Source of the DNA: Magallana gigas
Taxonomy: Eukaryota
Reading direction: 5' to 3'
Length of the DNA stretch: 64,000 bases
Assembly (NCBI RefSeq): GCF_963853765.1
Contig: NC_088854.1
Coordinates: forward strand, 34,534,001 to 34,598,000
Below the pieces are notes generated by a model, which saw only the letters and a list, made by a program, of their open reading frames with translations, did no database searches and had not been told where the DNA came from. Positions 17,206-63,187 of this stretch are shown one piece after another (the stretch's first letter is position 1; each line of letters begins with the position of its first letter). Both the position numbers and the translations under genes were made by a program.

Positions 17206-19964
17206 ATGATAATCTGGAGTTTGATCTTTGTTTTGTGGAACGCACGAGGTTCAAGTAAGTATTCATATTGACAACAGTGATTATCAAAAACTCTTTATAA
17301 AAATTGACAAAATACGAAAATGTAAATTAAAAATCTCAAGAAAACAACAATATATAGAATATTACAGATCTTGTCTATCACTTTCGTCAGGAAAAGGTGT
17401 TAAACTCCTCTGTAAAGAGTGAATCAAATGAATTCGTCCTGAAGGCACAGGGATCGAGTTCCACGGTGCCACAGAATCTTATATATTAAAAATGTTCTGT
17501 GTCACCTTAATGCACTATATTATCGGGGCTCTGAATATCGTGGTTTCATGTTAACTCTGTTGTGAACGATGACTAAATTTTAGCTCACCTGAGCCAAAGG
17601 CTCACATTAAAAAGATTTTATTTTTTACATAAGCAAAGTTTCAATAGCAATTTTAAGTAAAATTAAATACAGTGCATATATGTGATCACCGTGTGGGAAC
17701 GTATAGTGTATTACCTTACACAAAGTCTTTAAGAAGGATAGGTGGTCAACAATTCAACCATCAGATCTGCCTTAAACTGATATTTTAGCTTTCAAATTTA
17801 TCAGGTTTTTTTTTTATCTTTACATAGAGCTTTTTTTTTATTAGTAGATTTAAATAGTCTAAAAATGGCCACGGCCATTCTGCCGTCCTAACATTTCGAT
17901 TCAAGGTTCCTCGATACACAGATATTTTGTTTGATGGATCTTTTTTGAAATATGATTTGACAAAACAGAGACTAATATCGGCTTTTATGCACGGTCATTT
18001 CATGCATATCTTTTACAATTTTATGCTACATTATGGAATGCGATATCAATGATAAATGTATGCTATGAGATTTTAATGCAGTGCTATGAGATTTATATGC
18101 TATGAGAAATTGAAATAAAGAGTTTAATGATAGGGTATGCTATGCTATACTATGATATGCAGTGAGATTTGTACAAAATGTCTTTGTATACAGAAAAGTT
18201 TCAAACATTTCAAAGTAAGAAGATAATAAGGCAATGTTTACCACTAATATGCAATGTGAACATTTATTCTATAAAATAAGAGCATTTAAAATCGATTAAA
18301 AATAATGTTTACTGCTATGCTATGGTATTCTATGGTATGATATGATATGACAAATGAGAATCTATGAGATTGTATGCTATGGTATGACATTCCAATGCTA
18401 TAGTATGAGATTTAAAGGCAATGCTATGCTATGGTGTATATTGTAAAAGGTGTGCTTAAACTGACAGTAATATTGTTGATCTGGCTGGGACTATCAAGAA
18501 CATTTCACATGTTTGAGTGAATATTGTTAATTTATTTTGACAATAAATGCTGTATGAATTATTTCACGTGAAGTTTTTATGTATACAGAGGCGTTTTGTA
18601 CAAATCTCATAGCATAAGATACCATACCATAGCATACCATATCATTATGCTCTTCATTTCAATTCTTCATAGCATATAAATCTCAAAAAATCAACTTGTC
18701 AAAAAATCTGTAATTTTGTGGAAGCATCTTTGAGTCATGAAGACGAAAGTTCGTTCAAATCATAATCCCTTGGGTTAGGGAAAGGCTACAATGCGGGGTT
18801 GAATTTTTAGAAAGTAGTATTTAAAAAAATCTGTAAAAAAATCTTCTCAAAAACTGTTTGGACAGAAAATCTTAACTTGTGTGGAATCATCCTCTGGTAC
18901 AATAAAGGGTTTATTCAAGTTTGTTAAAATCATGAGCCCTAGGGTAGGGTGGAGCCATAATGGGGTGTCAATTTTTTAAATAGGAATAATATATAGAGAC
19001 AACTCTTTTAAAATTCTTTTAAAATTCTTCTCATGAAACCATTCGGCCAGAAAGTCTGTTACTTGTGTGGAAGCATCCTCAGATAGTGAAGATTACAATT
19101 TGTTCAAATCATGATCCCTGGGGTAAGGTGGGGCCACAATGGGGGCGGGGTCGATTTTTATTTTTTACATAAGAATACATGTACATTAATAAAATTTAAA
19201 AAACAATTGCTTCTTATAAACCAATTAGCCAGAACATCTATAACTGGTGTAGAAGCATCCTCGGGTAATGATCAAATCATGATCCCTTGGGTTACAGTGG
19301 GGCCACAATGGGGGGGGGGGGGGTTAAAAAATTTTCGGTGAAAAAAACTTCTAATTTTTTTTCAAACACAAAAATATCAAAAGAAGGAATAGTAATTTAA
19401 TAAAAAAGTTAAATCTTAATAAACAAGATACTCTGCGAAGCTATTTAGATATTTTATATTCGATACTTTTAAGACAGTCTTAAGGCTATTCTGATCTGTT
19501 ATGGCTATTGTTGCTCAGGTGAGCGCTGTGGCCCCTGGGCTTCTTGTTGTTCTGAACGACCTTATTAGAGTTAAAATGTATATGATATTCATATGATACT
19601 GCAAAATAAGCAGTAAACACGACACATGGTTTTAAATATTGTTCTACTTGTTACAGGCTGTTGTATCTTCCCCGTTAAGGGGACTTGGGACACCAGCGAC
19701 CATGGATTAGTTACATTTTCAGATACTGTAGTCAATGGATTTCGTAGCATTTTTTTCGGAACATCAGATTATACATGTGTTACCAACATTGATGAGAGAT
19801 ACATGGCTAGGTATGTCAACAGAGAGAGAGAGAGAGAGAGAGAGTTTTGCAGTTGCGGATCTAAAAATTTCCCCAATACGATGGGGTTGGGTTGAGGTTA
19901 AGTGTAAATACTAGATAACTATTATTATCTGTATATTTATTCTTTTTACCACTTATAAAGATAA

Positions 19965-20026
<62 letters not shown>

Positions 20027-23000
20027 CTAATGTTTGACCTAATGTTTTTTTAAAAGATGAATAAATCGAAACTGATGTTTATTGCAGATCTTCAAAATTT
20101 ATTCTACATGGTGTTGAATTTGAAGTATATCTTTGTTTACGTTTGATCTACGTAACAGCGAACAAATATAAATATCATTTGGCAACTGGTGAGTTTTTTT
20201 AATATTGTTCCTCAACTGTATCACATTGCTACATTTTATCAACTTCTCTTTAACAATAACATATAAATGTCTTTTATGTCTTCCTTTCTGTTAAGTAATT
20301 CAACAACAAAAAATTCAACTGCCACCCTCATCTCTTACGTAAATGAATTGTACGAATTCATTGAATAGATCTAGAAGAAGGTTTGCAACTCTTTTAAAAT
20401 AATGTTCACCTTTGAATAGCGTTTTCTAAATTTCTGGAAAAAAAGATTTTGTCTACCTAATAGAAAAAAAAATCATTTATAAATATTAGAGAATTAGATT
20501 CGAATAAGGTGTAAAATTGAGCGGCTTTTTTTTTTTTGTATTCAGATGAGAATCAGAATGCTGGCAACGAAAGATTGAAATCAGCCGCTTCTAATGCTCC
20601 TCTAACGTTTTCCGATGTCTGTGATAGAACTTTATTTGAAACTGGTTCATACAGCATGATGCTAAGATCAGGTATATAATCAAATAAATCATATATCTTT
20701 TCTTCACAGTTGTAATTATATACTTTGTAAATTGAATCAATGTTTTATACGAACAATTGTGAATGTCATGTCTGATTAATCTCCTTCTTTCTCCTTACAC
20801 TCATCGAGTGTAAGGAGAATGTCTAATGAATATCTCTTACGCGTTGTTTTTTTTTGGTGATTGAAGGGACCGTCCTTTCTGAAATGGTAGAATGTCCGAC
20901 AGATATCATAGCAAAGTGGAACTACGTAGTGACTGACTCCAATGGAAACAGTTACTGCACTGTGAATTCCTCCTTAGACATCTGTCAGAATACCACTCTC
21001 ATCTTTAACACTTCTGAATGCTCTGGAAACTTACTGCATTCAGGTAACCTAGTATATCCAAAATATAACGTTAGATATTTTGATTTTCTTGCTTGTATAT
21101 ACAATTTATTCAAGCAATACGACATGCCTTTTTATGACTGAAAGTTTAACTAAATGTCAAAACCAAATGTCAAAAATAATCTCACTTAGTTTCTGTTAAC
21201 TCAAAATTATTAAGGCATGTAGCAATAAGGGAGGCGTTGCTGAGCTCCAATTTATGTTGGAAGGCAGCATTTATTTAAAATTCACATATAGCAAAATAAA
21301 ATTTGAACGGAAAGAACTGAGCCCCAACTTTTAGCAGCACATGTACAGAAAACTTTTACAAAAAATTACAAAAAACTAATAACATTGATCAGATTTTTAT
21401 GAGGCCATATCCATTCCCCGTAGAATAATATCCCTACCGGGTATTTTGAGATCGTACTAATTGCTGGAAATCATTCATATGATCCCTTTTTGTGTCATAA
21501 CAAAATGCTCTGGTTTACATTAATTTTTTAGCATATCCAAAATATATGGATCCAATTTACTATTACCTTATCTGAAAAATTAGGAAATAAAAGAATTTAT
21601 CATGTATTGTATGTAAAACCTTCAATATTTTATGATAAAGCTAGAAAGAAACTTTTGCAGATAGAAGCAATTTAATATAATTATTTTTGTTACAAACCTA
21701 TACAATAAAGCGCTATTCTAAACGAAAAAGCACCGCTTCAATATGTTTTCTAATACGAAATGACAATGAATATAACTATATATCATTTTCATATATATTT
21801 AGTATTTCTAATTGTATGCTCCGATGGTAAAATTTTGCTTTTATTATTCACTATGTTTATTTTTCTTCATATTAAGATCAAACAAACAGCAGAAAGATTC
21901 TTTAAAATACTATAAACGTATTATCTTTGGCGTGTACGATATTTGGCGGAAATTAGTTTTTGAACAGGTTGGCGTGGATTTGAATTAGCGTATTCCTGAA
22001 TGTGACTATTCTTACGCATTTATGCATGGCATTTAGCGATGTACTTGATTTAGCGGAAGCCGCATTCCGCCAAAAGCGCTAAATAGAATACACAGCCAAA
22101 TGTAGTACGTTTACAGTATATGGTAAAATTAATAGCAGAGGGGCATTACAACTTAGTGCTAGAATATAAGGTTTTAAATCATTTCGAAACAAAATCACAG
22201 TATTAAAACATGTGTTTGCTTAATATTCCATGATCTTACACACATGTATCTTTCTTCTTATAAAACTTGACGCTTTGAAGTTTCTTACAATTAGGGTCTA
22301 ATGTTCATATGAATGCATAATTAGATCCATTTAAATAAGACCTTGGACTTTCGATATGACTTAAATATCTATTTCTTGCACCAAAACAAGTCAAAGACTT
22401 GCAAGTCAATAACAAGCTGGTTTCGAGTGAAATATGCATAGATTGCGTAGTCATAACTCAAAAGCCAGACAAATCTTGTTGAATTCAAAGAACCATGGCT
22501 GAGTGACCAGCAATGAAATACGTCACATTGCTTTTTACCCAACTACCCAAAGTCTAAGCTCTTGTTAAAATGGTTCTATCATAAACGCAAGTTTTTGCAT
22601 TCGTAAATTAACAATAGCTTTGAAAAAAAACTATTATCTGTAAACATTTATCTTTCAGTTGATGGTTCCTTCCATTGCATATATACTACCCAGGTTACGA
22701 CTTCTTCCTATTACATAACAACGTACAACGCTGACACCGTCACTCCCAACGAAAACACAACGTTCCGTTTCTCCTGTCTGGTAAGTACATTAACTCTCCT
22801 CCTTTTCAATGAATACAACAAACGTAGTGCCTTTAAAAATGTGTTCTAAAAGTATACATGTATTTGAAATGAACAAGATTTAAAGTTTTAACACAACCCG
22901 AGTTATGCTCCCACAAACAAGACAATGCCAACCAAAAATTCAAAAACAAAAACAAAAAAAGAAGCACATAGATACCTTAATTAGTTTGTTTTATATGCAT

Positions 23001-26000
23001 ATGTAAAAGATTGTAAACGCAGAATAATATTGTTTAAGCTGCAGAGCAATAAACGTCATATTTAACTCCTTGTTTGGTCAGCCACCTTTGTTTGAGCTAT
23101 TTAATCAACTCACTTTTTATCGTTTCGGTCGCTCACATTAATTAAAAGCTCAAGCGAGCTTCTCTAATCACATTTTGTCCAGCGTGTGTCTATCCGTAGG
23201 TCTGTAAACTTTTGAACATTTTAGACCAAGACACAAGACCAAGTCCACAAACATTCCTTTAACCACCCGTTTTTGAAATCAAATATAAATTGTCAACATA
23301 AAGGGTCAAATCTTTTTCAAAGGGGAAATAATCACAACAAGGTTAAAAAGGGCGTCTTGGTATAAATTAGTTTTGATGAACCACCAAGGAAACCCGTTTA
23401 GAATAAAGGTCTATATACATATATTATTTTTTTAATTAGCTGCAAAGCAACAGTGTGTATTAAAATGCAATTATCATGGTGTAGTATAGATTTAAGAGGG
23501 ATAGATGGTCATGGCCATTTTTAGACTGAATTGATCTCCCTTGAAAGAAGACCCCTATATAAAAATATTAGAAAATATCAACATTTAAAAGGTAAAATTT
23601 ATGATTTTTTTTAACAAAATAATAGTTTATTGCTAAACTTAGCATATCTTAAAATTTAAGGTAGATCTGATGGTTAATTTGTTGACTATGCAGCCTCCTT
23701 AAAATTGTTCAAACCTTCACCCCTGATAAAGTGGCACTCTATATACCATTGGAAGACACTTGGGACCAAAAGAGGTTTAAATTTTTAAGTCAAAAAAGTT
23801 TAAACAAGTTTTAATCTCGTCTATTTTTCCTCTGTCTCTCAGAACCTGATTAGAGTGTTTAAAAGAATGAGTTGCAAGAACTCACTTAATGAATGACTTT
23901 TGCTCAAGTAAGCGATTTGGCACATCAGTATCGTATTTTGTTTTTTGTAGCTTATGGAAGCAAACACCAAAGACAATATTTCTTTGTATCAATATCCTCA
24001 ACATTGCCATCCATTTCAAAATGCCAAAAACGTATCACCAGAGAATTTATTATCGCTCTCTTATCAAAGTAAGTAATAAAGTGAAGAAGATGCATTATTA
24101 ATTATTCGCAATCAGTTGTTTAAGTGTCTCATGATTTCTTTTCATTTTCCTTCCAGGATCATGTGGTAAGTAAATGGAGATGATTACATAGTTGCTCCGC
24201 GCAGTCACCCCCGTACTTGGTTCGTGAGTTGTGGGATACATACACAGACTGCAGTGCAGTATTTGTATAAGACAACATAAATCAATCATATGTGACACGC
24301 CATTGATATTCCTTGACAAAGAAGAGTAAATTCTCAAGGAAAAAATGACAAAAACAGTCAAGTATATCAATTCCTAAGCCCCGCCCCCGATAAGTAGATA
24401 TTCACATAAACTTTCACTTTGTTGGATTCTTATGGTTTGATTTCCTGTATGAATATTCATTGTTGCTACTATATACATGATTATCCAAGTCCATAATATT
24501 ATATTCTATGAAATCCATTTTAATATGGACAATTGCTTCATTTTTTTAAACTTACAATACCATGTATATTGAAAACCGTGCTTTTCACTTGCTTTTTTAA
24601 AGAAAATAAATCATTGGTTGGTTTCGCGGATTATACTGTTTAAGTAGATATACTGTCTAAATTACAAACAAAACATTAAAGTTGTTTAAAAATTCAATTA
24701 AGCATTATTACTTTCTGGTGTAAATAAAGTGTCTAGGAAAAATATTTTGTTGAGCTTATAATAACTTCTACATGATTTTTTGCAGCTACAGATATAATTA
24801 TATTAAACACAACAATTACGCCCACTTTGACGACGCAGAAACCAACGACTTCCGACGCAAACCAAGCCTATATAGCTGTGGCCATTGTTATACCAATCCT
24901 TATTGTCAGCATCATCGCAGTAATAGTTGGGTATTTGTTGTGGACAATGTACCAAAGAAAACTGAAAGCTAAGCCTTTACCAGATCCCAAGTTTCTTCAT
25001 GGTGAAATAAGAAATCGCAGACTTAATGTCCAGTTTGAGGGTATGTCGCCGACATACACAGACAGAGCGAATGTGTTGACAAAAATATCAGAAGACAGCC
25101 TCAGTTCTGCAATGATACAATCAGATTTATTGGAATCTTCAAGTGCAGGACCTTCAAGTCTATCGTCTTTATTGGTCAGTGTACCAACTCCCCACACTAA
25201 GGATGACGTGTATGTAATCAAGGAGTGTGTCAATGATTCGCCACATAATAATGACCTGGCACCTTCAATGTCCACGCCGGAAAATGATGATACCAGTATG
25301 GATATAAGTTTTCATTCTATTGGTGTTGATACGAGAGATTTGAAGAGTTCTCAAAACAAAAGAGAAACGCGGAGAACTTACCGGCGTCGTTTCCGGTTAG
25401 GGCGTTCCCGAAGTTCTGTCGGAGATAGCTTACTCTCCTTCCGCAAAGACAAATCAACATCGGTAAGATGATGGCAAAGCATCGATGAAAATTATCAATT
25501 ACAATAATCTAAATTTTCGTTTGTTCTGTGCTATGTGGTCATGTTTCTTGTTATCCCGATCTCATAAAATAATTATTTGTGTAAACCAGTATTTAACTGT
25601 ATCTAGAAAGCTTAAAGATAAACCATCAGTGTTTCTAATTATGCTTAGTGATATTTGACAGAAATTATATATCTTAATATGTGTATAAGTATCTCGATTA
25701 CTTTCTTGTTATTATATATGACAATATTCTTATAGAAATCGGTTGTGACATTTGGAACAAAGAATGTAGTTCTTGGAATACAGCCCCCGCCGATGAAAAA
25801 GAAAAGAAACGTAAGTTTTTCCTTGTTTTGAAAACATAAAACTATTAAAAATTCAAAAGAAAAAAAACCCTCAATAAATCAGAATCCGTCCGAATGAGTG
25901 ATAGTGGATCACCAGTGGTAGCATAGACTGGAAATTTCAGCCACAGGGATAGATTTCCGAACCTAATGTTTAAATTCCCATTTAATGGATACTGTAGTAT

Positions 26001-27059
26001 ATTTGTAGGGCCCAAAATCGATGAGAATTTAAATCTCCATGTTTTAATTTTTCATTTTGATTGCGTTCAAGGATGAAGTTCACTTTTAAAATACGAATGG
26101 AAAATTGCTTTCTAAGTACTAATGCACTCCATTTCATTTAATTGTTACATTGACATGAGAATATTTTTTTTGATTGGACATGGCATCTACTATCAATTCT
26201 TCAATATAAGTGGTTGTAAAATGTTACACAATTTGTAGTATTTTACATCCTAGCCTCGAAATAAATATATACAAATATTTGAAATATGTGTACAAACTTT
26301 TCTACAGAAAAATAGTTCTATTGATCGATCAGCACAGCCGATGGATGTGTTAGGAAAAAACGAAGTGAAAGACAAAATGAAGAAAACAAGAAAACACAAA
26401 TCAAGTCAAGAACGGCAAATTCTACAGGCAAGTACTAAATTATATGAAATTAAGTTAGTTAAATTACATTAAACCCTCCCCCCCAAACCCCCCCCCCCCC
26501 AAAAAAAAAAATCATTGCTTGTGCCTTGATAATTGTAAAAAAAACCTAGAAAGAAATGCAGCTTTCTAAATCTAATTTTTTCTTGTTTGATAAATATATA
26601 TAATCAATTTCCGTTTTGGTAGTTTGACTTAAAACATTCACCAAATAAATCAATATAGATTTACAAGTATTGTTGCAGACACCTGACACAGCTAAATCCA
26701 CAGTGTTTGAAGAAGATAAGACAATAACAGAGGAGGAACGTCACCCAATCATATTTTTTACGCAATATCAAGAGGAGGGTAATGTCAGATACTGCTAATA
26801 TAGAATAAAAAACAACTGGCATTTATGTGATGTGAGTGTTTATTTTTCTGTCTAAATATATATTTTTTATTTTATTTAGGATAGAAATTGCAATATTTTG
26901 TTGAACTTGTCCTCTCCTGTACATGTAGCCAGAGAACTAGTTGACTCCAAATGCTACCAAGCACTAATCATCGACAAGTGGCGCCATCCAAACCGTACGG
27001 CGTACATATGGGTTCCCGGGAAAAAAGTCAATATTTTACAATGGCGATCACATATGTAG
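17206..27059 (+). CDS. Gene A: uncharacterised single-pass type-I membrane protein, paralogue of gene B; exon 7 disrupted (possible pseudogene or truncated secreted form)
   Basis: Exons 17206-17254 (signal peptide MIIWSLIFVLWNARGS), 19657-19810, 20088-20188, 20546-20671, 20867-21043, 22659-22780, [24157-24325 decayed], 24786-25462 (TM AYIAVAIVIPILIVSIIAVIVGYLLW), 25736-25810, 26308-26427 (GC donor), 26679-26778, 26880-27059. Exons 1-6 are stop-free and phase-consistent. The last tail exons are lower confidence. Confidence 0.75.
17578..19548 (+). mobile_element. Helentron-associated non-autonomous element (HINE) carrying a Cg170-like satellite array, with nested insertions
   Basis: 5' end TTTTAGCTCACCTGAGC and 3' end GCTCAGGTGAGC..GGCCCCTGGGCTTCTTGTT form a perfect 12-bp subterminal inverted repeat. 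About 4 monomers of ~165-185 bp (CTTGTGTGGAAGCATCCTC..GTTCAAATCATGATCCC..GGGCCACAATGGGG) lie at 18710-19330. Confidence 0.7.
18050..18685. repeat. Degenerate pentamer (TATGC/TATGA) repeat with inverted ~100-bp arms
   Basis: (TATGC)-type runs at 18050-18445. The segment 18585-18685 is the reverse complement of ~18085-18195. Confidence 0.6.
19821..19844. repeat. (AG)12 microsatellite
   Basis: Starts 10 nt after the gene A exon 2 donor. Confidence 0.95.
19967..20026. repeat. (TC)~30 microsatellite
   Basis: Ends ~60 nt before the gene A exon 3 acceptor. Confidence 0.95.
21908..22118. mobile_element. TA-flanked MITE (Tc1/mariner-type TACTGT..ACAGTA family)
   Basis: Termini TACTATAAACGTA ... TACGTTTACAGTA; internal TTTGGCG/TTTAGCG repeats. 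Confidence 0.7.
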
Positions 27060-28020
27060 TATTTTAGAACCAGTTCTAATGTATGCCGTGTCCAGGACAT
27101 GCAATACAGATATGAGCGTGCATATTTGAAGTTCTGATAGGTTTTTTTTCCATTTTTTCTTCAAAAAATTAAGTTATTTTTTTAGAATTTAGTAATGAAA
27201 ATCCGTTTTTATACTGATTGTAGAGATAAATAATGAACTGGACAAACCTGGTGTGTATTTTCTATTGTTATTTAATATAATGAAAACTGTCATACTGGCA
27301 ATTACGTTTAAAATCAAAGTACTGAAGTACTGACGGGAGTTGGTTTTATCGATTACTAGTATCATTTCAACGATATGTGATTTTGCATGGCAAAAAGTAT
27401 CAGTAATCGAAATATTTCTGAGAAATGTATGGATCCAGGCAAGATTGAACTCATGTCTTGTTCAACCAAACGCTCGGCTGTCTCTGTTTATCTCCGACAA
27501 GAAAGAGACTCTGTTTTGTCGGATATTAAAGGAGACAGCCAAGCGTCTGATTGAACGAGACTACACTGAACTCCAGCGTAGGAATACATACGACTTTAGA
27601 AAATATCTAAACTGTTTGTACAATTTAAAATCTAACTATTTTCATGGTACTGATAAATAAGTTTTCTTGAAAAACAATGCTTCAGAATACATAGCATCGA
27701 ATTTATCGATTATTTTCAAGAAATAAGTGTTGTCAGCGGTACTGATTTGTGCTTAGGTCCAAACACTGTTTCACTTTCGCTTTGCCCGAGTAGGTGCATA
27801 GGAGAGTTGATTAAAATCAACTCCCAAAAATGACAATTATTTCTAATGAATGAATTACAGCAAACAATGCTTATGTGCACATGAAGTACATAACAAAGTA
27901 CATGTGATAATATGAGGCTCATACCTATATATGAGTAAAAATAATACGGAAGCGTATCGGGTCCTACACTAATTGTGTTATGACTCATATCATTTTTTAC
28001 CTTCTTAAAGTTATCAACAT

Positions 28021-41280: not shown

Positions 41281-41347
<67 letters not shown>

Positions 41348-41881
41348 CCTTTTTAGTTTCTTTGCTGTTTTTCAAATGAAGCACAAGCATATTGGATGCA
41401 TACTGCAAGATATTGGGAACTTCCTTCTTCGAAACCTTAAATAAATTCAAATTTTGGTGTACATACGGTTTGAATACTTAGTTATTTTAATTAAAAGGAA
41501 TTTTTGTGTTATAAAATATACAATTGCATTCTCCTTCACATATCATGTATCCAAATTTGAAGTGCTTACACGTTTTGTATGGAGGGATGACTTGGACCCC
41601 GTAGACATAAACGGTGAACTCCCCAGTGATGTGTCGCCATCTGCTACTGCACGGGCATGTGCTCGGCTCGCCGCCGCCAGGGCTTTATGTATTTCCCAGC
41701 GGTTCTGTAGATAGTTTGGTCATTTTGAATGTTGGTTATCGATATGCACTTACACTGTACGGTGATTCTGACAATTTTATCTATACAGCCATACCTTAGA
41801 CTTGTCTATCTTAGATAAATCTATCTTTTCATAATTGCTTCTTTTCTTAGGTTTCAATCTGTCTTTCCGAGCTTGCTTCAG
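40664..41881 (-). CDS. Four phase-0 coding exons (distal 3' end of gene B or end of a separate uncharacterised gene)
   Basis: Exons 41881-41795 (LKQARKDRLKPKKRSNYEKIDLSKIDKSK), 41704-41570 (NRWEIHKALAAASRAHARAVADG..), 41124-40897 (QFDVLLKMKTT..RKHRKVADAE) and 40720-40664 (LDREIDPENVKHRWHHLK*). All are canonical YAG/GT and join in frame. The upstream exon is not resolved. Confidence 0.7.
41285..41345. repeat. (TA)n microsatellite
   Basis: ~30 TA units. Confidence 0.95.
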
Positions 41882-50500: not shown

Positions 50501-53500
50501 ATGATTTATGCAGGTTATGAAGGTAGCGATCATTGCAGAAAAAAATTACACAACCCGCTTACATGGGCAAGGTATATTTCCTGAAATGTCGCTACATTCA
50601 TATCATGCATGGATCACCAAATAAAGCATTTTATTGTTTAAATGAGACCAACAAGTATTTATATTTAGATTTTAGGCGGACATTCATCACTTTGTCAGCA
50701 TGTCTATGAGTTTATGTCTAACCATGTACCGCAGAGACTTGATCCATTTTATTTCAAAAACACGTACTTTTTAAATGAAAATTGAGGGTTTGCAAATGTA
50801 GGTGTTCTGTAATGTTCTGAGAAATGCACAATGTTGATTCAACAAGTTGCTTCTGTAGGATAAATTTTGAATAACTAGTTATCTAATTTAAATATGAATA
50901 TATTGGATAACATATCTTATTTGTGTATTAATAAAATCAAGTTTAACATAATAGTTCTTGAAGTACAAGGTATTGACTCATTTGAGGAAAAGGCTAATGC
51001 AACATCTCATTTCAAAGGGTACTTGCCTGATTTTAGAAACATATTGATAGCTTTGAACAGTGTTGCTTATAATTTCCAAGTAGAATTAAACCGTTGCAAA
51101 TCAATCGATTAAACTATTGACGATAAACTAGAACGTAACAAGTAAAAGATATTTACTCTACAAAAAGAAGGTCTCTTCACATTCTACAGTTACAACTCTT
51201 TTTAAATATATATGTATTAAAAGTAAATAAAAACTTTTATTTGGTTAGAAAAAAAACCCCAACCAAAAAGAGGGTGTGGATCTGAAGTGAAAATGTTAAC
51301 AGATTGCATTTATCTTCGTTCCCCGGATGTTAAAGTGCATCGATAACATGCACATCTGAATTTAATTTGATTAGCCATAAACTTGCGGAATTTTCCTGAT
51401 GGATATTTAAGTGAATACAAAATTGCTTTTGTAAATTCATCAGTCTAAACATCGTAACAATTTTTCAGTAAAATCACTCGTCGCCTTTTAAAATATAGAT
51501 TAACTTCTCTGAGTAAGCTTTGTTTATATCAAGTAAGCTTATGATATAAGTTTCATTTCCATCTTGTTTAACAATTAACTCTTATCTCAATGTAATATGT
51601 TCATGTATTAAGTCTTACAAAATTTAGGAAATTATCAATGTTTTGTCATTATTTCTTTTTATCACAATTATTCGTACACTGCCTTGAAATTAAGTGTTCA
51701 TTGTATTGTAAATCTTAAAACACTTGAATACACAAGATCAACCACTTTGTAAAAAAAAAAAGAATCAAATTTTGTCTACATGTACTTTATATTCAACTAC
51801 GGGCATAAAGTCGTATTATAAATCTTACATATCCACATATCAAATTAAACTCTGACTCATTAAGAAGAGTTTTGAATGTAACACTTTTAACAATATGTAC
51901 ATTGTTTACAATAAAAGAAATATTAATTCCATTGGCCTACAATCATAAGATATCCCAAATCTTTAGATCTATTGCTAAATTATTTTCTTTTTAAGTACTT
52001 CCATTTAACTACACCATATCTAATAATCCGATGATATTAACCAAACCATGCGTTTAAAGTGTATACGTGAAACCGGTATACAAGTCAAAGCATTTAAAAA
52101 TGCTTGTAAAACAAATAAACAATACAGCAGACCCTATAACAAGTAATAATACAAGTCGGCCATGAGTTCGAGGTGTGCAATCACTGAATCAGGTAAATTG
52201 AATGTGAAAGAAAGAAAAATCCTTATAGTGAATTCATATCTATGATTCGCGTTCAGCTTAAAATCAAAATGATCCTCGAATACTTGAATCAATTCAATCA
52301 GATTTTGCTTATTTTTTGTAAAGAAAATTTTCTTTTTGTTGTCGATTAAAAGAAGTTTAAAATTCAAGAAGCTATACTTCTTCACATGGTAATCAGAACT
52401 GAGTTGTTTATCATTTCACGTACTTATAGATGCAACATATTTAACTTTATGTTTACCTTTATTTTTAACTTTACCTTTTTCTTCTTCTTTTTCTTCTTCT
52501 TTTTTGATTCCCACTCCCCGTCCAAGTTCATTGTGTTCTTCCTTTTTTTCCATCCAGCTTGCGAAAAAAAGTCAAATTCATCCGAATCAGGATCACTGTA
52601 AATCACTTCCTCTGGTTTTTGTGGAATGTCCTTTTCATTTTCTGGCAGTTTGTCACCTTCGGTAATAGAATCCTTGTTTTGGAGAAATTTATTTTTCGTC
52701 TTGGAGATTTTTTCTCGTGCCAGTTCTTTGAGTCGTTTCATCGCACTCTTAGAGCGCGGTTCAGCTACTTCAAATTCTTCCACATCGTCTTTGCGTCTCC
52801 TGGCATCAATCCAATCCTCAGAATCCATCTAAAATTTAAATTCTGCTTACAAATCGCGTACCATCCTTTTGATGGCTTGCGTTTTATTTTCCGGAAAATA
52901 AGCATTTTTTAAATATAAATTTTAAGAGGCAGAGCCAAAACCCTGAAAGATCCAAACCCGGGCTAGATTTTTAAAATCCTTAGTCCATGTAAATACTTAT
53001 AGAATGTAAGCTGTTAAATAATGAAATATGATCATAAAATTTAGGCAGAGGTTTCAATAACTAGTTACACTGGCTCAACAAGTGAATGTCACTAAAGGTA
53101 CTGCATAATAAAAAGTTAACACTGCTCAAATTAGAGCATTAAACCCACCCTTTACCTAATTGTTTCGTCATTTACATTTTTTTTTTCAATACAAGGTCAT
53201 TCAAATTGCAAGGTCACGAAAATTGATGACAGACAATCTTAAACAGAAAAAACTTTGACAAAACATGAAATCATATAACATATTACTGTTGCTTTGAAAA
53301 CAAAATAAGACGACACATTTTCGTTTGTAACGTATCAACTTACCATTTGTCGCAGTTTGTATTCATCCATAAATTCATCATTCTTGAAAGCCTGTGTAAA
53401 GAAAACATCAATTATAGAAAGTACTATTTATTTTATGTGGTAATGCATAGTTCTAACAGAGATATATACGAAGGTCAATCAAAAAATACGAAGACAATGT

Positions 53501-56500
53501 AGCTGTCTATCATATGTTTTTAAGACCAATTCAAGAAAAAAGTGGGGATGTTCTGTCCTGGTTATAAAATCTTTAGATTGTTTTGTTTTTTTAAATATTT
53601 ACATTTTAGTGTCTTTGTCTGTCGTTACACTACGTATCGATTTTATACTTTATAGACCAATAACAATAAATTCAAATGACGGGCGCAGTATAAGCGTAAG
53701 TGTGGTTTGTTTGTTTATATTCAATTATTTGATGAAAATCATGTAAATATAAGTAATCATTCTTTGAATATTATGAGGTGATAATTTCAGTCGGGGTGTA
53801 ATCAAAACCTTCGGGCTTTATTGGATTTCATCATTGGAACATATGGTGAAATTTACATGTGATATACAATTTGTTTTTCTCAATTTTCAATTCATCCAAT
53901 TCAGCCGGAATTAGCCCCCTGTTGTGGACTCATTCTGGCTCATTGTAGAACATCGAATTAGACTATAAAGTTATGTTTCCATATCAATTTGATAAATGTA
54001 CACAAAAAGTTACTCAGAAAAAAATGTCCGAAGATATTTTAAACAAATTGACCTTCAACTTAAGCCCCCTAGAGGAGCCATCCTGACCCGGGGGAACCAT
54101 TTGAACAAAGTTGAATCTATACTCTATTAAGTTTATGCTCAATGAGAGTGATTCTACATATTTTTGTGATTTGTTAGTTCCGAAGTCCTTATTAAGAAGA
54201 ATATTTAAGACACCCACATAGTTTGTCAATTATTGTGATCGGCTTCGGCCGTTCACAGTTGTGTCCATATGAGGCATCTGGCAAATTTTACGATTTGCGC
54301 ACGCATTGCGTCTTACACTACTTTATGTTACTATGCAATGGCAACCTCATTCAAATATTTAATTACACGTAGATTTTTAAAACGTTACTCTTATCCGTTT
54401 GCAGTGAAAATAAAACATTTATACAGATACATCATAATGATTCAAATCACGTTTTTCTTCGCATATGCGTTTTAATATTTATTGGAAGTATAATACGCCT
54501 ACTAAAAGTAAAGTATGCTTTGCTATTTTGGAAATCAACAAAAAGGTGCAATTTTTAGTTTAGTACGTGTACGCGTAATGCTTTCGTTTTACATTAACAG
54601 AGCTGACCAATGATATCACATGCCGATCATTCCTTTAAAGGGGCATGGTCACGATTTTGGTCAAAAATTATTTTTTCGATTTTAATATCTATAATGCTTC
54701 ATTAAGGAATTTTTAATAGGCAACCAAAATTTGAGTGTCACTTGTTGAGTTATAAGCGAGTTACAGAGCTTACAATTCTTCGCTATGTAAACAAAGCGTT
54801 TGTTTACATTTTGAATGTTGAAGTGAAAATTTCAGTTTACGACCTCAAATGAATGTTTTAATCGTTAAGAACTGTTTATCTATGCTTAAAATGAATAAAA
54901 AGATAGACAAATCAGCCCGAAAAAGATTTTTTACTGGTTTATTGAACCTATGTAAACAAAAACAGGGCACGAGCCTTGTTTACATGACGAAGAATTGTGA
55001 GTCCTTTATCTTGCTTAAAACTCATCGACGGGCACCCAAATTTCATTTGATCATTAGATATGCATTCCTAAAGCATTGTAAATAATAAAAACAGAAAAAT
55101 AAAATTTGACCAAAATCGTGACCATGCCCCTTTAAAAGGAATACTTGTTTTCCCTTGAATAAGAGGCATTGCTCTTCTTTTTAAGAAACTTGATTTCCCA
55201 TCAAGAAAGCATACTTCTGCCATTTTTTTTTTTAATTTGCCATTTGATTCTAAAGAAAAAGATGAAAATGTAAAACGTAACGACGAAAAAAAAGGGACGA
55301 CAGCGACAGATTCAGACATTAGACATATTATTATTTAAAAATCTCATTTGAACCTTTGGTTCCAGTGACCCAAAACCACTTTTTTCATCTTTAAGGTAGT
55401 GTGGAGATGTCAAATATGAGAGGTTACAAACCTCATTGTCTCGATCTATAAGTCTTTCGTTTAAGTCGGTCTCCACCTTTGTTGGCGTGACGGGCTCTTC
55501 GTCCTCGTAGAATAGTCGCGTGATGTCATACACCGAATCGTCTGGCAGGCCCAGGTCAAGGGTAGGAGTGAGGGCAGCTTTTTCCATTCGAATTCTTTCT
55601 TTTCTTTCTCTTTCTATTCTTTCTAGTCGATCCTCTTCTTCCTTTTTCTTCAAGGCTTCGGCTTCAAGTCGTTTCTTTCGTTTGTAACAGTAATATACTA
55701 AGGCTATTACAATGGCAATTACGATAAGAAATGCTAGTAATCCAAGTACGATCGCCACTGTCGCACTGTATGTTTCTTCGGTTGCTAAAATAAGAGAAAA
55801 GATTGGTTAGTGAACAAAAGTGAGCAAGAAACAAATGGATCTTAACAGTAATCCAACTAGATACAAAAAGACATGAAAATAAATATCGGAAAGAATATTT
55901 GGTAGCATTTTTCAACTTCAACAATTGACAACTAGTGTTTATTGTTATGGTAAATCCATTCTAAAACAATCGTCATTAAATTATTATCATTCTTCACAAA
56001 TATCAAGAGTTAAAATCTGGACTTGTTTCACCAATGAATTTTAAATGTAAAGTTCCTTTCGCGAACTTTCCGTGAAGTTGCGGTTAGCCCGGTAGCATGC
56101 CAATCGGCTTTCTACTAAAAATACTACCCAACTTTCACAAACGTATCTTGTATTTGATTTGTATTGTAAACTGTAAATTGTAATGTAAAAGTTCTTAAAA
56201 TCCATATGGTGAATTCAGGGGAAAGCTCAATTCGTTACATTCGCTCAAGTTTACGCTGAATAAAAAAACTCCAAAACGAAACAAAAATTCAACAAGTTGT
56301 ATTTAAGTTGATGAAATAACGGTACATGGTATTCCAATGAAAACCGATTCTCTGAGTTTCGAGATAACAACTTGATAACGTGCGGAGATTCCAGCACGGA
56401 CAGTCCGATATAATTCTTTGCACAAAATCGACACTAACGTGCGGAAATCCAGCACAGATAGCCCGATATCACACACACTCCACTAACGTGCGGGGTTCCA

Positions 56501-59500
56501 GCACAGTTAGCCCAACATAACACTCTGTGCTAACGTGCGGGGTTCCAGCACAGCTAGCCCAACCGTTCTCTTCCAGATCTTAAACCATTCTCTCTTACAA
56601 TTATTTTTTTTGACAGGCATTGCTTTTTTTATGACAAATGGATAGTAATGGTATGCCAGAAAAGTAAACATTCACACATATAGCTGTTACGATAATTTCA
56701 CACTTCTACTGTCCAACAATTATTTAATTTGCCTGGAGATTAAGTAAAGAAGATATCAAAGACTAGTGTTAGGAGGATTAACATTTTTGTCAAATGAAAG
56801 CATCTCCGTTTGTTTGGTTATTTCCTCTTTTTTTTGTTACAAACTCAATTGCGTAATTAATCTGAGAGAAAAAAAAACCTTAAGTTATCATAGCAGCTTG
56901 TAAATTTTAAATCGATAACCTGTTACATCAAAAGTTTAAAATCGAAGATTTCTAAACTTATCTATAACAATCTTAGAAATCTTTGATTTTAAAGTCGGTT
57001 TGAGACAACAATATATTACTTGATTGATCTAAAAAGTACCGATATTTATTTTGAATCTAAACAAATTATTTTACAGCTAGATAACCTAGATTTCTTGTAA
57101 AAATACGGTTTATTCGCACTTTATATATTTGCTTTAGATCAGTCAAAATATACTCTACATCAGTTTGAATTTCAAAATTTCACTTAAATTTCGCAATTTC
57201 GTTTAAAATTCTTTTTGAAATAAGATTGTTTAGTGATTGATTTATGCTAGTGACGATTATTTCATCCATGGTTAAAAACATAATTATCCACAAATCTCGA
57301 TTTTCATTTGCATACTGATATTTTGTACCCACAAATATAACAAGTGTACCTGGCCGACTTTGACATGTATTTATCGATACTTATATAATGCATTAATTGA
57401 GCCCATATCTTAAGCTTTAGTTTAAATATGCTATGATAGTAGTTTGTACCAATTTAGATTACGTGTCAATAAATCTTTATAAATTTATAGATCTTTGTTT
57501 GTTAAAAACATTTTATTTTTTGGGAAGTGATAAGATCCGCAAAATAGCTCTTAATTTTCGACTGTTAAATTCCCAAATTACCCATATATCTAAGCTAAAC
57601 ATGTAGCTTGATTTAAAACCATCGTGGCAGTGACCATTCTTAGCAGAATTATCGCAATTTTTTTACATGTAGCAGTATGAATCCTTCTCTAGGTCTTAGA
57701 TAGTAAAACGTTACCAATATTCCTTTTCAAAAGATTTTTTAAAATTATTTTTTATCATTTTTCAAATAGTCATATGGATTTAAAGTTTAAAGAAAAAACT
57801 TTATGCATCAACTTACGACAAACTGAGAGGGACGACAGAACAACGAGAGCTCCGTTAGAGTCGGCGTACGTAGAGTTCCCATTTGGTGGACAGTCTTGAG
57901 GATTCTGGGACATGAAGACATTGTTACTATCGGAGGAAATTATCTGTAAAAAAAAAATTAACTCGGTATTTATTTTACATGCAGTTTGAGTATTTCATTA
58001 ATTAATCATTGATCAATGCGTAAGATTAACTGAACTATCAAGTTTACTCAGTATGTCAAATCTACTGTAAACAAAAGGAGTAGTTGAAAAGAAAATCTAA
58101 TTCATGGAAAGCGTCAAACTTAGCCGGAGCATAGGCCTAGCGATTGTTAATAATTAACCACGATATGGTAAGAAAAATGGATATTTTTTATTTAATATTT
58201 TTTTTTCTTTCAAAATACTTTTATCTAGTACCTTTTATTGGAATGATTGTACTCACATAACAAGTGAATCTGTAGGTGGTGGATTCGTCTGTTGTTGTAT
58301 CTGTGTTATACACATACAGATAAGTGTAGGAACCAACCGTTGTAGAGTGCAGGCAGTATAATTCTCCAGAAGCTGCCAAAACGTAACAAAGTGATCAATG
58401 ATTGCATGTAATGATCATTTCAAGAATGTAAGGGGAAAAAAATCTTTTGACATCACGTGTCAATACTTGTAACCGATGTTAAAGAGATTCATATGGTATC
58501 TACTAATCAAAAATCTGAAATTTTCTCTAACTGATGTTTGATCAGAATAAGAAAAAGAGTTGTACCATAAATGGTATAGAAAACAAGTGATAGCTACCGG
58601 TATATCTTATTATCAAATTCATATTGTTGGTGATAAAAATGATGTTAAAAGATTAAAGAGAATTTAATGATTGACTTACTGGAGTATGCTTGGGTCTGGG
58701 TACATTTCGTGTAATCAAAATCTAAAACTCCTGTGTTAGTACACACGTCGAGGTAAGCATCGTCGCACACGTTTCCACTGCCGGTGTCATAAGTGTAGTT
58801 CCAGTTCATCTGCAACTGGCTAGGACAAGTTATTTTGGCTTCTTCGATGCCACCTAAAAATGACATTTAGATATTTATTAAAGGACTGGACAATATACGG
58901 TAAGTATCGATTCTTAAAAGAGAAACCAATATTATCCTTGATTTCCTAAATCAGAAAAGGATATAGACAAATATCGAAATACTCTGAAAATCGCGAGACA
59001 AGCAAAACGTATAGGTAATACATGTCATACTTTGCTTGTGATCATGACTTTAAAATTGTCCTATACTCGACACTAAATGTGCTCATTAAATGAAGGCTTG
59101 GTTTTTTCATATAATAGATGCACGCACTAATAATCATAGACATAAGACAAAACATTATGATATGCAGTCAAAGATTACAGAGCTCAACGATTTTATCATG
59201 CAATATGAAAATAATAATTAATGATCTTTTATTATCAAATTATTGTTTACCGTGGTTTGGTATGACACAATATTGTAAAATATAATACGACATTGTATCA
59301 AATCATGTTAAATACAAGATCATATGGTGCAATATCATACGATACAAGATCAAATGACACAATATTGTAAAATATAATAAGACATTGTATCAAATCATGC
59401 TATACAAGATCATATGGTACAATATCATACAAGATCAAATAACACAATATCGTATCACATTATACAATATTGCATCATATGACACAATATCATGTAATAC

Positions 59501-62500
59501 GGTACGATTATATATTAAGATATTGTATACGTATCATAACGATATAATATCACATGACACAATATCATATTTAATCATATGATATATTATAATACCTCCT
59601 ATCAGTTTGTCTCTATAGATTCAATAAAAAATAAATCATCTAATTTCGCATAGTATAGAAAGGATTTATATACATTGAAGCGTAAGCATACTTTTCCGAA
59701 GTAAAGCAGGCAAAAGTCTTCCTCGAAAACCTTACAATACCTGGAGATGCTTCCACACAAATTAATAAAATCTAAGCTTTTCTGGCCAAATATTTTTTGA
59801 GAAAATATCTTTAGAATTTCTCGATTTATTCCTATGTAACAATTCATCCCCCAATTGTGGACCCATCCTACCAACGGGGACCATCATTTAAACAAACCTG
59901 AATCAACACTACCTGAGGATGCTTCCATACAAATTCAAGCTTTTCAGGCCCAATAGTTTTTTAGAAGAAGTTGTTTTTAAGATTTTCTCAATATACTCTT
60001 ATAAAAATGTGGCCCCAACCTATCCCCGGGAACCGTGGTTTAAATAAACTTAAATCTACACTACATGAGGATGCTTCCATACAAGTTCCAGCTTTTTTAG
60101 TCTAATTGTTTTTGAGAAGATTTTAAAGAATTCCTATATTTATTCTTAAGTAAAACTTGAGTCCCTATTGTGGCCCCATCCCACACCTGATATAGAAAAA
60201 AGCCCAATCACGTCTTGTGGTCGAGATTTATGCCAATGTAGAATAGGAATTTTATTTTGGGGACATAGTAGTAAATTCTATTTAACAGTTAGTATTATGT
60301 CCGATCATTACATAGAACCGATGCAGATATAGTAGGGGGCAAGTTGTTTTTTTTTTTTTAGAAACCGACGCATCTCTTAAATATACAGAAAAGAAAATGA
60401 ATTTCAAAGAGACTGTCTTCAAACATAATTGATCTTTAATCTTAACCTACCCTCTTTGACCATGATGTGATTCGTTAGATCCGTCGCTGAACTGGCATCG
60501 CAGAAGTCGCTTATTACGTTCACTACCTTTTTGTCATCTTTTAGATATATTTTGATTCTTTCATTTCCAGCGTCACTCAACTGATCTAGCATTGTAAAAT
60601 AGAAACAGAGAATCGACTATTACATTCAGTACTCAATTATGGGATAATTCATACCATGTTTATTACATTATGTTCATAAGTAAACACACAGAATATACTA
60701 AACATAGGTCGAGTTATCAAAGCAATTGCATTCAGTCTATAGTACAATCACTCACTGGTCGGGGTGTCGTAGGTGAATTTGGTGCTTGATTGTTGAGTCA
60801 TCCGCAGGCATAGGAAAGCTTCCAAATTTAGTCCAAGATACGTAAATTCTTCGGATCTGAAAATTTGAATTCAAATTATTTACAAATATATATTCAATAT
60901 TTAAAAAAAACGAGACATTGTGTCACAATATTTGCACATGAAAACCACTCATTCACAGACCTGTGAACGTGAGCGCTGAACGCTTCGTTGTTTTGGAATA
61001 ATAGGAGTTTCTTACAACAACCCTTAAATTAAGACGTCGTGAAACGTGCCCTAGCTAATTCAGTAGTATCCCTGGTTAGTTAAAAGTGAAAGGAGGACTA
61101 ATTTTTTTTAAAATAACAATTTATAATTTTCAATTGTATCACATATCGTCAGTCTCTTTTGGTAAAAAAAAAAAGAAATGTCGTAATATAAAAATATATG
61201 CTATATCGTACTGATTCTATTACACATTTTAGATTTTAACTTTAACATGATTATCAAACATAAGTATTAAACAGCTTAATTGAAAACATGAAACTGCTTA
61301 AAGGTGTTGATTTTGTAAGATTTTTCTAATGCTAATAAGTGACATTATTGAAGGCATTCCCGGTATCTTAAAGAAAATTTTGTTGAATAATATACAACTA
61401 CATGTATGTGAAACTATTTCATGACTGTTTGCTCATGATCGTTGTATAAGATTTCTTTTGTATAATAATGAGTTACAATTTTTATATTATTTTTTTATTT
61501 ATACATAAACAGAAAGAATATATTCCTATCGTGCTTTCTGTGGTATTTATCAGTGGTAAAAAAAATAACGTTTTTAAAGAAATCTATGTATTTTGATACA
61601 AGTAACCGGTTAATCGGTTGGAGTGAATAACGATTAACTGATTAATCGATTGACATTCCTACTGGATATTCTCATTAAACTTTTACCTGTTATTTTAGCC
61701 AATGAGTTGTTCTAAGTACTAATTTAATTATTGGATAAATAATATGATGGTGTGAGTTGCCATCCAAACAACACTATTAGCCGTATTTATTTGTAGATTT
61801 CATGGGAGTACTCGTTTATATACACGTCGTATTTATTATTTTTGACTGAGTCTCTATACAGCCATTTTTTCTATTTCGTGCATGTGTCATTTTTTGTCAA
61901 AGATTTTTAGCTATTGCTCCTCTTCTTGATTTAAGACTATGATTAATTATTTTTTTTTGGTAAAATTGCTGTTATAACGTACTGCAATTTGATTTTCTCT
62001 ATAATGACTTGAATAGATAGCAATAAAAATCTTCTCGCCCCCCCCCCCCAAAAAAAAGGAGCGCGTAAAACTTTCTTTTTATTGCCGCTAATATCTACAA
62101 ATGGCATCGCATAAATGGTAATAAAACATGTCAATGACAATTTAAAAAACGTGGAAATTCGGGGATCCACACACACCTCCAGAAACCTTAGCTGAAACCA
62201 TTTAATTAAGGTGCCTCACTACACCTTGAAATAGTTTCTCAAATTGGCAGAAAATTACTTGATTATAATAGAAAGCATAATAAATAAGAAGTATATACCG
62301 GTATGTCAAATGGGCGAAAAAATGTGCAATTTTAGATAAAAATGATATTTTTAGAATTGTAGTTCAGTAAACATGAACAAAAGCCCCAGATGGATTCGAA
62401 CTCATTCACAAGCATGATACTTTAACCACTGAGCTATGAGGATACAGATCTGAATCGATTGATATAAACAGTTAAACAAAACATTTAAATCGCCATCTTG

Positions 62501-63187
62501 TGACGTAGTGTCTTAACAAGTATATGTCTCGGTGTAGTAAAGTACCTTAAAGGGTATTAAAAATATCACTGACAATTTTAAAAATTGGAAATACGGGGAG
62601 GAAAATATTTCAATATTGAACCTAAAGTTAGTTGTGTAACGCTAAACGTAAGGGTTTTCAGTCTTAAGATCTCGATATAAGAAGCTTAACTTAAGATTAT
62701 CAGCACAAAACATTTAACACCGGTAAAAGGGAGTCTTACCTTAGGACGTAGTTGGTCTGGTCCGTACTGTCGCAGGTAAATGTGAAAGAACCTATCGTCC
62801 ACACCTGCCAACCAGCGAGGGTGGTGGATGTGAAATTAAGGGTTCCCTTGTGGCTATCATACCAAGAGTCAATGCCAGACGACCAAAAATTCCCCGGGAA
62901 GACGCATGTACTCTCTGAAAAATAATTTCACTGGTGGTTGAGCGCCTACATATTTATACGAACCAAATTGCATTGCTGGATCTATAATGATAACACTTTC
63001 GTTATGCTACTTTTACAATGATTCGGTATGAAGTATATGCATGCACCAACTCACAGTAGTATAGGAAAAATGATTTTATAAAGTCAGTATATTGAATTTC
63101 ATTGATCATTTGATCTTACAGACTTGATATTGAGTTACCTGTGCACACCAGAAGTGAGACAATGACAATCAAACTCCGGAAGTTCAT
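44589..63187 (-). CDS. Gene B: uncharacterised single-pass type-I membrane protein with a Cys-patterned ectodomain (possibly DUF7042-like) and a long charged cytoplasmic tail
   Basis: Exons 63187-63139 (signal peptide MNFRSLIVIVSLLVCT), 62914-62740, 60856-60756, 60585-60451, 58853-58680, 58372-58257, 57943-57817, 55784-55432 (TM VAIVLGLLAFLIVIAIVIALVYYCY, then KRKKR), 53391-53344, 52828-52475, 47642-(gap at 47305) and 44782-44589 (stop). All visible junctions are GT-AG and phase-compatible. The domain name is an unverified recollection. Confidence 0.85.
47101..47305. other. Assembly gap (205 N) interrupting gene B exon 11
   Basis: Run of N; the open frame ..KQYFDYAR runs into it. Confidence 0.99.
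48745..50344. mobile_element. PIF/Harbinger-type non-autonomous element (1600 bp)
   Basis: ~43-bp TIRs GGGACCAGGCAAAATTTATCAC..ATGGGACCGGTACAAA (2 mismatches), perfect TTA TSD (48742-44 / 50345-47), and subterminal TGTCCCAT repeats at both ends. GGG termini plus a TTA TSD are diagnostic of PIF/Harbinger. Confidence 0.85.
50480..50642. repeat. Long-hairpin repeat family H1, copy 4 (palindrome only)
   Basis: TGCAGGTTATGAAGGTAGCGATCATTGCAG..TGTCGCTACATTCATA..AAAGCATTTTATTGTT. Confidence 0.7.
53595..53835. repeat. Long-hairpin repeat family H3, copy 2 (right arm truncated)
   Basis: Colinear with 3107-3370. Confidence 0.7.
54030..54270 (-). repeat. Single Cg170-related monomer next to a GC hairpin (HINE fragment)
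   Basis: GACCCGGGGGAACCATTTGAACAAAGTTGAATCTA resembles the satellite monomer on the minus strand. Adjacent hairpin TGTGATCGGC-TTCG-GCCGTTCACA. Confidence 0.45.
54639..55131. mobile_element. Full-length TTAA MITE (Kolobok/piggyBac-like), 493 bp
   Basis: TIRs AGGGGCATGGTCACGATTTTGGTCAAA / TTTGACCAAAATCGTGACCATGCCCCT with perfect TTAA on both sides. Confidence 0.9.
56376..56563. repeat. Four-unit minisatellite with a conserved ~33-bp hairpin core and variable linkers
   Basis: TAACGTGCGG(GG)TTCCAGCAC(A)G.TAGCCC-like core at 56376, 56435, 56484 and 56531 (periods 59, 49, 47). Confidence 0.8.
59255..59585. repeat. Degenerate pentamer (ATATC/ATACA) repeat with a ~95-bp direct duplication
   Basis: GACACAATATTGTAAAATATAATA..GATCAAAT occurs at ~59263 and ~59357. 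Confidence 0.65.
59690..60185 (-). repeat. Cg170-like satellite array (~3 monomers)
   Basis: GAGGATGCTTCCATACAA-like cores at ~59740, ~59915 and ~60065; reverse complement of the 18710-19330 monomers. Confidence 0.75.
62210..62546. mobile_element. TTAA MITE (337 bp) carrying a tRNA-like Pol III module
   Basis: TIRs GGTGCCTCACTACACC / GGTGTAGTAAAGTACC with TTAA on both sides. Internal minus-strand A box TAGCTCAGTGG (62436-62426) and B box GTTCGAATCC (62401-62392). Confidence 0.75.

Follow-up and report, generated by a model that had tools for sequence, protein, structure and literature searches.

We analyzed a window of 64,000 nucleotides from the oyster Magallana (Crassostrea) gigas (C2:34,534,001-34,598,000, within a chromosome-scale contig of a 564-Mb assembly; positions below are counted from its first base). 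Its DNA is AT-rich (~32% G+C) and holds two intron-bearing genes, here called A (plus strand) and B (minus strand), that are convergently arranged, tail to tail. Identical M. gigas database proteins identified gene B as LOC105326810. Judged from their sequences, A and B are old paralogues, convergently arranged, of a mollusc-expanded family defined by the DUF7042 domain.

Enumeration of AG/GT sites around the open frames of A and B gave eight collinear exons in each gene, with canonical splice sites and the same succession of intron phases (1,2,1,1,1,0,1). The exons that precede the transmembrane exon measure 49, 154, 101, 126, 177, 122, and 118 nt in A and 49, 175, 101, 135, 174, 116, and 127 coding nt in B. 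The coding part of exon 1 is 49 nt long in both genes and ends one base into a codon (A 17206-17254, B 63187-63139), and exon 3 is 101 nt long in both (A 20088-20188, B 60856-60756). These shared phases and lengths had been reported in a preliminary description of the sequence; the splice-site enumeration reproduced them, and transcripts confirmed the junctions of B from exon 1 through exon 9. Exon-wise global alignment of A with B gave z = 6.2, 10.2, 5.5, 8.4, 9.7, and 4.3 for exons 2-7, with none of 500 shuffles reaching the observed score. The signal-peptide exon showed no similarity between the two genes (z 0.3), and the tails were not alike past the transmembrane helix. The earlier proposal of an ancient duplication that kept a conserved ectodomain and left unrelated tails is thereby supported (z 4.3-10.2 by exon).

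A family profile built from 28 ectodomains, A not among them, matched exons 2-7 of A with E 4e-16 to 7e-3 and in collinear order; run on the window, it returned no further match outside these exons. Most of the motifs quoted in the preliminary description are present in the two genes, including YLCLR/FLCLR, AGNER(L/I)K, LD(I/V)C, YN(A/T)D, and FRFSC/YRFTC. Two differ in spacing from the description: the motif quoted as CP..(W)NY is actually CP-6 residues-WNY, and the spacing of C.FP..W is slightly unequal between A and B.

Gene A opens with an ATG and a signal peptide in exon 1 (17206-17254, 49 nt, ending in phase 1), and all of its exons lie on the plus strand. The first of two predicted beta-barrels starts in exon 2 (19657-19810, 154 nt), which is bounded by AG/GT sites and matches profile positions 12-72 with E 1.5e-8. 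Exons 3-7 were each placed by splice sites, alignment with B, and the family profile. Exon 3 (20088-20188, 101 nt) carries the YLCLR motif (E 5e-7) and exon 4 (20546-20671, 126 nt) the AGNERLK motif (E 7e-8). Exon 5 (20867-21043, 177 nt) encodes the first half of barrel 2, of DUF7042 type (E 4e-16), and exon 6 (22659-22780, 122 nt) its second half, with YNADT...FRFSC (E 1.7e-8). Exon 7 (23951-24068, 118 nt) holds the final ectodomain strand and stalk, without the last conserved cysteine (E 7e-3). Exon 8 (24786-25462) encodes a Thr-rich stalk, the transmembrane helix (~24866-24943), and a tail with the motifs PDPKFLHGEIRNRRLNV and RRFRLGRSRSSVGDSLL. Spurious poly-RE/poly-LS and poly-IY frames arise from long microsatellites, (GA)n/(CT)n and (TA)n, at 19815-20035 in A intron 2 and at ~41290-41340.

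Reading through exon 8 leads to a stop at 25469-25471, where the preliminary description ended the gene. A word search with the transmembrane/tail exon of A found a 216-residue open reading frame (ORF; P0107) on two independent spliced contigs, L023 and L024, in both of which exon 8 ends at a donor at 25462. The GTAAGA of this donor also encodes the last two residues of the earlier model, and the spliced contigs bypass its stop. They continue into exon 9 (25736-25810, 75 nt; conserved in Saccostrea P0110), exon 10 (26308-26427, 120 nt), which is followed by a GC-AG intron, and exon 11 (26679-26778, 100 nt). Contig alignment placed exon 12 at 26880-27170, with a TAG stop at 26882-26884 and then a 3' untranslated region for which this is the minimum extent. 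The 3' end of gene A had thus been misplaced: with the four added exons, the predicted protein has 607 residues rather than the 510 of the read-through form, which may be made as well.

Four motifs of the A tail are conserved among oyster genera: PDPKF.HGEIRNRRLNV, GPSSL.SLL.SVP, SIGVDT.DL, and RRFRL.RSRSSV.DSLL, the last of which resembles a site for basophilic kinases. Scallop A-like proteins share the first motif as well, with 54% identity across 35 residues (E 4e-10). No Pfam family matched the A tail. A reading of A as a pseudogene was rejected because the frame is open across 12 exons, the transcripts are spliced, and the tail motifs are conserved among oyster genera.

For gene B, transcript contig L025 (2002 nt) encodes a complete protein of 616 residues and aligns to the window in 14 blocks of 97-100% identity. 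The boundaries of these blocks are exactly those of the predicted B exons 1-9 and, after them, of five more exons that lie between 41881 and 40600. All B exons lie on the minus strand. Exon 1 (63139-63274) contains the 5' untranslated region, the ATG at 63187, and a signal peptide within its 49 coding nt. Exons 2 (62740-62914, 175 nt), 3 (60756-60856, 101 nt), and 4 (60451-60585, 135 nt) agree between splice sites and the transcript contig. The DUF7042 domain is divided between exon 5 (58680-58853, 174 nt), which is likewise in the contig and alone scores 26.9 bits against the Pfam model, and exon 6 (58257-58372, 116 nt), placed by splice sites, Pfam, and the contig. The ectodomain ends in exon 7 (57817-57943, 127 nt), which is backed by splice sites, RNA-type runs, and the contig. 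Exon 8 (55432-55784), fixed by the joints 57817|55784 and 55432|53391, encodes the transmembrane helix (~55684-55764), a helix rich in E/K/R, and the motif GLPDDSVYDITRL. Exon 9 (53344-53391, 48 nt), seen in RNA-type runs and the contig, is the last exon shared by two alternative tail forms.

Contigs of three RNA-type runs contained the joints 57817|55784, 55432|53391, and 53344|52828, all of them GT-AG and on the minus strand, and the depth was zero over 55190-55375, in the read-through part of exon 8. The preliminary description had named, as a result that would refute it, transcripts that fail to link the ectodomain exons to the transmembrane and tail exons; the contigs instead join B exons 1-9, and thus ectodomain, transmembrane helix, and tail, in single transcripts. 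The E/K/R segment and K10 run that it had noted in the B tail are both present.

From exon 9, B is spliced to either of two tails, and both choices occur in the same runs. The short form passes from exon 9 to five distal exons (41795-41881, ~41570-41705, 41349-41435, 40897-41103, and 40600-40720; together 40600-41881 in contig L025) and corresponds to the 616-residue RefSeq isoform X2. A loose contig end at 53344, seen in two runs, translates on the coding strand into the start of this distal tail. The long form passes from exon 9 to exons 10, 11, and 12, which gives 720 codons by exon arithmetic, and is collinear with orthologues of 725 residues in C. virginica and 709 residues in Saccostrea. 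Exon 10 (52475-52828), which follows the joint 53344|52828 in two runs, ends with the K10 run at an inferred donor, 52475; an A-rich repeat lies in the same region (52400-52510). Exon 11 (47306-47642) carries the LPPLQRV and SENKWKLLLEELY motifs, and exon 12 (44589-44782) carries LDYLYDRAKYW and ends with a stop at 44589-44591; both were placed by orthologues. Phase and orthologues likewise point to the exon 10 donor and to the exon 10-11-12 joints.

The last base of exon 11 touches an assembly gap of N (47101-47305) at the start of B intron 11, where the splice donor is unread. Exon 11 (337 nt) starts in phase 0 and leaves one spare base, the A at 47306, next to which the N run begins. One base is exactly what the acceptor of exon 12 at 44782 requires, and it would complete AAA (lysine); C. 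virginica reads ...DYAR-K-SSAGRR... with nothing between. Because of this fit of spare base and acceptor phase and the uninterrupted C. virginica orthologue, the gap most likely lies wholly within B intron 11, and the B coding sequence is probably complete. ORFs drawn through the N run were set aside as artefacts.

Both B tails are conserved beyond the oyster. The long-tail motifs GLPDDS.YDI.RL, DEFMDEY, LPPLQRV.RK, SEN.W..LLEELY.DK.YFDY, and LDYLYDRA.(Y/F)W recur in Mytilus and Argopecten proteins. The short-form tail has 81% identity in C. virginica, and its last ~100 residues have 41% identity to a Mytilus californianus isoform (E 1e-15). Since both tails are conserved in C. virginica and mussels, the choice between them by splicing is old. 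No Pfam family matched either B tail.

In B intron 8, a repeat of ~500 bp with sharp ends (54635-55135) reached a contig word depth of 17,000-52,000 in one run; at its edges, 54634/54635 and 55135-55137, many reads run off. These features suggest a highly abundant, transcribed dispersed element resembling a short interspersed nuclear element or a miniature inverted-repeat transposable element. A second patch of high depth lies at 53702-53887. The intergenic DNA that separates the 3' ends of the two genes contains a series of plus-strand ORFs of 73-250 residues (32875-35441), some of them basic and rich in Lys/Arg. They had no Pfam match and look like a decayed mobile element.

We compared the two proteins with Pfam, in which the gathering cut-off for both DUF7042 and DUF7043 is 27 bits. 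A B protein, P0004, which matches B exons 1-9, scored 46.2 bits on DUF7042 (PF23069) over residues 163-269, which confirms the earlier guess that this domain is present, and nine relatives scored 34-65 bits. P0004 gave no match to DUF7043 (PF23070) at E <= 0.01, and four of these relatives (P0015, P0011, P0027, and P0041) matched DUF7043 across the N-terminal domain below the cut-off, at 17.6-23.3 bits. The exons of A, scanned singly against Pfam, gave no match at E <= 1. Compared with the proteins that Pfam groups under DUF7042, DUF7043, and DUF7044, B passes the DUF7042 threshold and its barrel 1 falls short of that for DUF7043; A and B also have a transmembrane helix and long tails, each tail characteristic of its own orthologue group.

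Homologues were found in bivalves (oysters, mussels, scallops, and unionids) and in gastropods (Haliotis, Patella, and Aplysia), and several of them carry the UniProt name "DUF7042 domain-containing protein." The 8.4 million papers searched contained no mention of DUF7042, DUF7043, or DUF7044. The pair had been put forward as the best candidate for an undescribed system; this does not hold, as the family is already catalogued in Pfam under a DUF entry and RefSeq includes both genes as models with the name "uncharacterized protein." In two database ORFs matching exon 5 of B and A (P0006 and P0009), Ile, Phe, and Leu take the place of many Thr, Ser, and Pro residues, the pattern expected of C-to-T converted (bisulfite) reads assembled as ordinary DNA.

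Across the oyster genome, the family profile gave 84 exon-level matches, at least 31 of them of exon-5 type, and all lie on C2 except for one locus at C3:20.94 Mb. The family is therefore expanded, as had been proposed, and nearly all of its exon-5-type matches are on one chromosome. A third member lies 56-62 kb past the end of the window, on the 5' side of B (C2:34653714-34660147, minus strand), with barrel-1, exon-5-type (69.5 bits), and exon-6-type matches. At C2:44.02-44.08 Mb and 45.21-45.28 Mb, barrel-1 and barrel-2 exon matches alternate densely on one strand, ~2 kb apart. Intron-free frames of 477-714 residues occur at C3:21480156-21483494, C3:32957653-32961870, and C6:3643688-3647026, with canonical matches to both DUF7043 and DUF7042 and, in some, a second copy of DUF7043; these form a different branch of the family and were possibly retroposed.

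The arrangement of the pair is itself old. In the scallop Argopecten irradians, an A-like (plus strand) and a B-like (minus strand) gene are convergent neighbors 4 kb apart, the B tail is common to mussels and scallops, and the A tail motif is common to scallops. Taken with tail motifs that are particular to one orthologue group or the other, this convergent pair indicates that the duplication predates the oyster-scallop split. Oysters, mussels, and scallops keep one-to-one counterparts of A, B, and their tails. The tails had been described as exchanged between family members; each tail type is instead kept within its own orthologue group, and the only exchange we observed is the alternative splicing of B. 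In exon 5, the scallop A-like gene has 30% identity to oyster A and 45% to B, and by this comparison the oyster A ectodomain has diverged faster than that of B. Two family members are also adjacent in Haliotis, head to head. At the A. irradians locus (L019:1-7768), the gene upstream of the A-like gene encodes a reprolysin/ADAMTS-type metalloprotease.

The order of parts in the A and B proteins is shown or predicted with confidence: a signal peptide, two compact all-beta barrels that 12 conserved cysteines are predicted to brace, a short Thr/Ser stalk, one transmembrane helix, and a mostly disordered tail, as in a type I membrane glycoprotein. With the same confidence, the second barrel is Pfam DUF7042 and the first is DUF7043-like. 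The ectodomain alignment contains 12 invariant or nearly invariant cysteines. From the alignment of 28 sequences, AlphaFold2 predicted two all-beta domains (~residues 7-138 and 148-275) with a mean predicted local distance difference test (pLDDT) score of 90.4 and a predicted template-modelling (TM) score of 0.87, and DSSP assigned 8-10 consecutive strands to each domain. The ESM Atlas returned the mollusc cluster of B itself (TM-score 0.96), and clusters of DUF7043+DUF7042(+DUF7044) proteins from molluscs and arthropods superpose on the model with TM-scores of 0.65-0.68 over 239-251 residues; a feature search of the Atlas that set aside the DUF704x families gave no usable match. Comparison of barrel 1 with barrel 2 by hhalign was not significant, and therefore no internal duplication is detectable between them.

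For the long tail of B, we modelled the C. virginica orthologue as a proxy. AlphaFold2 predicted it to be mostly disordered (pLDDT 53), with a confident charged helix of 42 residues next to the membrane (pLDDT 83-94). Because only this membrane-adjacent helix is confident, we claim no folded domain in the tail.

In a VIA exhaustive search, both halves of the ectodomain model aligned to lipocalin-like eight-stranded barrels (Z 5.4-8.3, the best matches at 6.0-8.3; root-mean-square deviation 2.7-3.8 Å), and domain 2 aligned to mouse APCDD1 (8e0p/8e0r) with Z 5.8 over 115-120 residues. APCDD1 crosses the membrane once and has two lipocalin-related barrels and six disulfides; its lipid pocket is thought to capture the palmitoleate of Wnt, and it is a Wnt inhibitor (PMC10193966). 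Like it, A and B have 12 conserved cysteines and are predicted to be type I glycoproteins of the cell surface, with one membrane pass and two neighboring beta-barrels related to lipocalins. They differ from it in the size of the barrels, ~135 residues in the A/B family and ~210 in APCDD1, and in their long tails, where that of APCDD1 is short. The oyster also has a separate, true APCDD1 gene (C3:54.24 Mb), and the B protein and its relatives had no Pfam match to APCDDC (PF14921). As modelled, the architectures of APCDD1 and of A and B are strikingly parallel, but homology is not supported by the profile searches. Set beside the lipocalin/calycin superfamily, both halves of the model align to eight-stranded up-and-down barrels. 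The aligned sequences are only 4-13% identical, no lipocalin family of Pfam matched, and the A/B barrels are membrane-anchored, tandem, and disulfide-rich.

Considering these results together, we lean, with modest confidence, toward a model where A and B are duplicated type I glycoproteins of the DUF7042 family whose calycin-like barrels would serve as a binding module at the cell surface and whose tails would couple this module to trafficking or signalling. The ligand of the barrels would probably be either small and hydrophobic or a protein that carries a lipid, as Wnt is for APCDD1. Occupancy may then be coupled to trafficking or signalling by linear motifs and basophilic phosphorylation sites in the tails, with B offering two alternative conserved tails by splicing. 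The roles suggested in the preliminary description, those of a receptor, an adhesion molecule, or a signalling protein whose cleaved tail enters the nucleus, are conjectural here.

Several observations weigh against this model. Z scores of 6-8 are in the range that the search tool calls a common arrangement for models without a clear relative. Foldseek against the PDB found nothing at E <= 0.001, its weak top rows being tandem-barrel proteins, and a search of PDB sequences with the family profile had zero matches at E <= 10. Comparison by hhalign with the two APCDDC domains of oyster APCDD1 gave probabilities of 0.05% and 0.26%. On the side of gene A, the junctions of exons 1-8 rest on splice sites, phases, and homology rather than on transcripts. 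In the A ectodomain, moreover, the last conserved cysteine is missing and an additional cysteine stands next to the first, at the N-terminus; the disulfide pattern of A may therefore differ.

A possible though less likely explanation keeps the same genes and fold and takes the barrels as rigid protein-binding or adhesion modules without a pocket, so that A and B would be cell-adhesion or matrix-contact molecules. The ectodomain is disulfide-rich and, by its sequence, heavily N-glycosylated, and the interleaved module matches at C2:44.02-44.08 Mb have a layout typical of adhesion or structural proteins. The nearest solved folds, in contrast, are mostly calycins that bind small molecules.

We consider it unlikely that A and B are innate-immune pattern-recognition receptors of a mollusc family that expanded under pathogen pressure. 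The clustering of at least 31 exon-5-type copies on one chromosome and the fast divergence of the A ectodomain (30% identity to scallop A-like in exon 5, compared with 45% for B) would agree with such a role. However, the one-to-one conservation of A, B, and their tails in oysters, mussels, and scallops is more in keeping with housekeeping or developmental functions than with fast-turnover immune genes, and Pfam scans found no known immune signalling domain in the tails. Least probable is that the long B tail belongs to a separate downstream gene starting at the ATG at 52828, with B ending at an in-frame stop near 55315: exon 10 does start with an ATG and the exon 8 frame is open to the stop at 55315, but this reading is refuted by the transcripts, in which two runs contain the GT-AG joints 55432|53391 and 53344|52828 and depth is zero over 55190-55375, and the orthologues of C. 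virginica, Saccostrea, Mytilus, and Argopecten hold ectodomain and tail in one protein.

Returning to A and B as surface glycoproteins with a calycin-like binding module, a more specific form of this model can be drawn, which we regard as doubtful. The two-barrel DUF7042/7043 module would be an invertebrate counterpart of surface lipid binders of the APCDD1 type, and B would be a receptor that reads one hydrophobic or lipidated ligand and passes the signal on by either of its two spliced, anciently conserved tails, of which the strongly basic one might have a nuclear function once cleaved.

Molluscs have many members of the DUF7042/7043 family, which also occurs in arthropods. A and B provide a clean entry point to it, as single-module genes that are conserved one-to-one and expressed, with a conserved choice of tails by splicing in B. 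If the barrels bind no lipid, A and B are simply a well-annotated pair from an uncharacterized gene family. If instead their ligands are lipids or lipid-modified signals, as for APCDD1, the family would represent a new class of invertebrate cell-surface lipid sensors.

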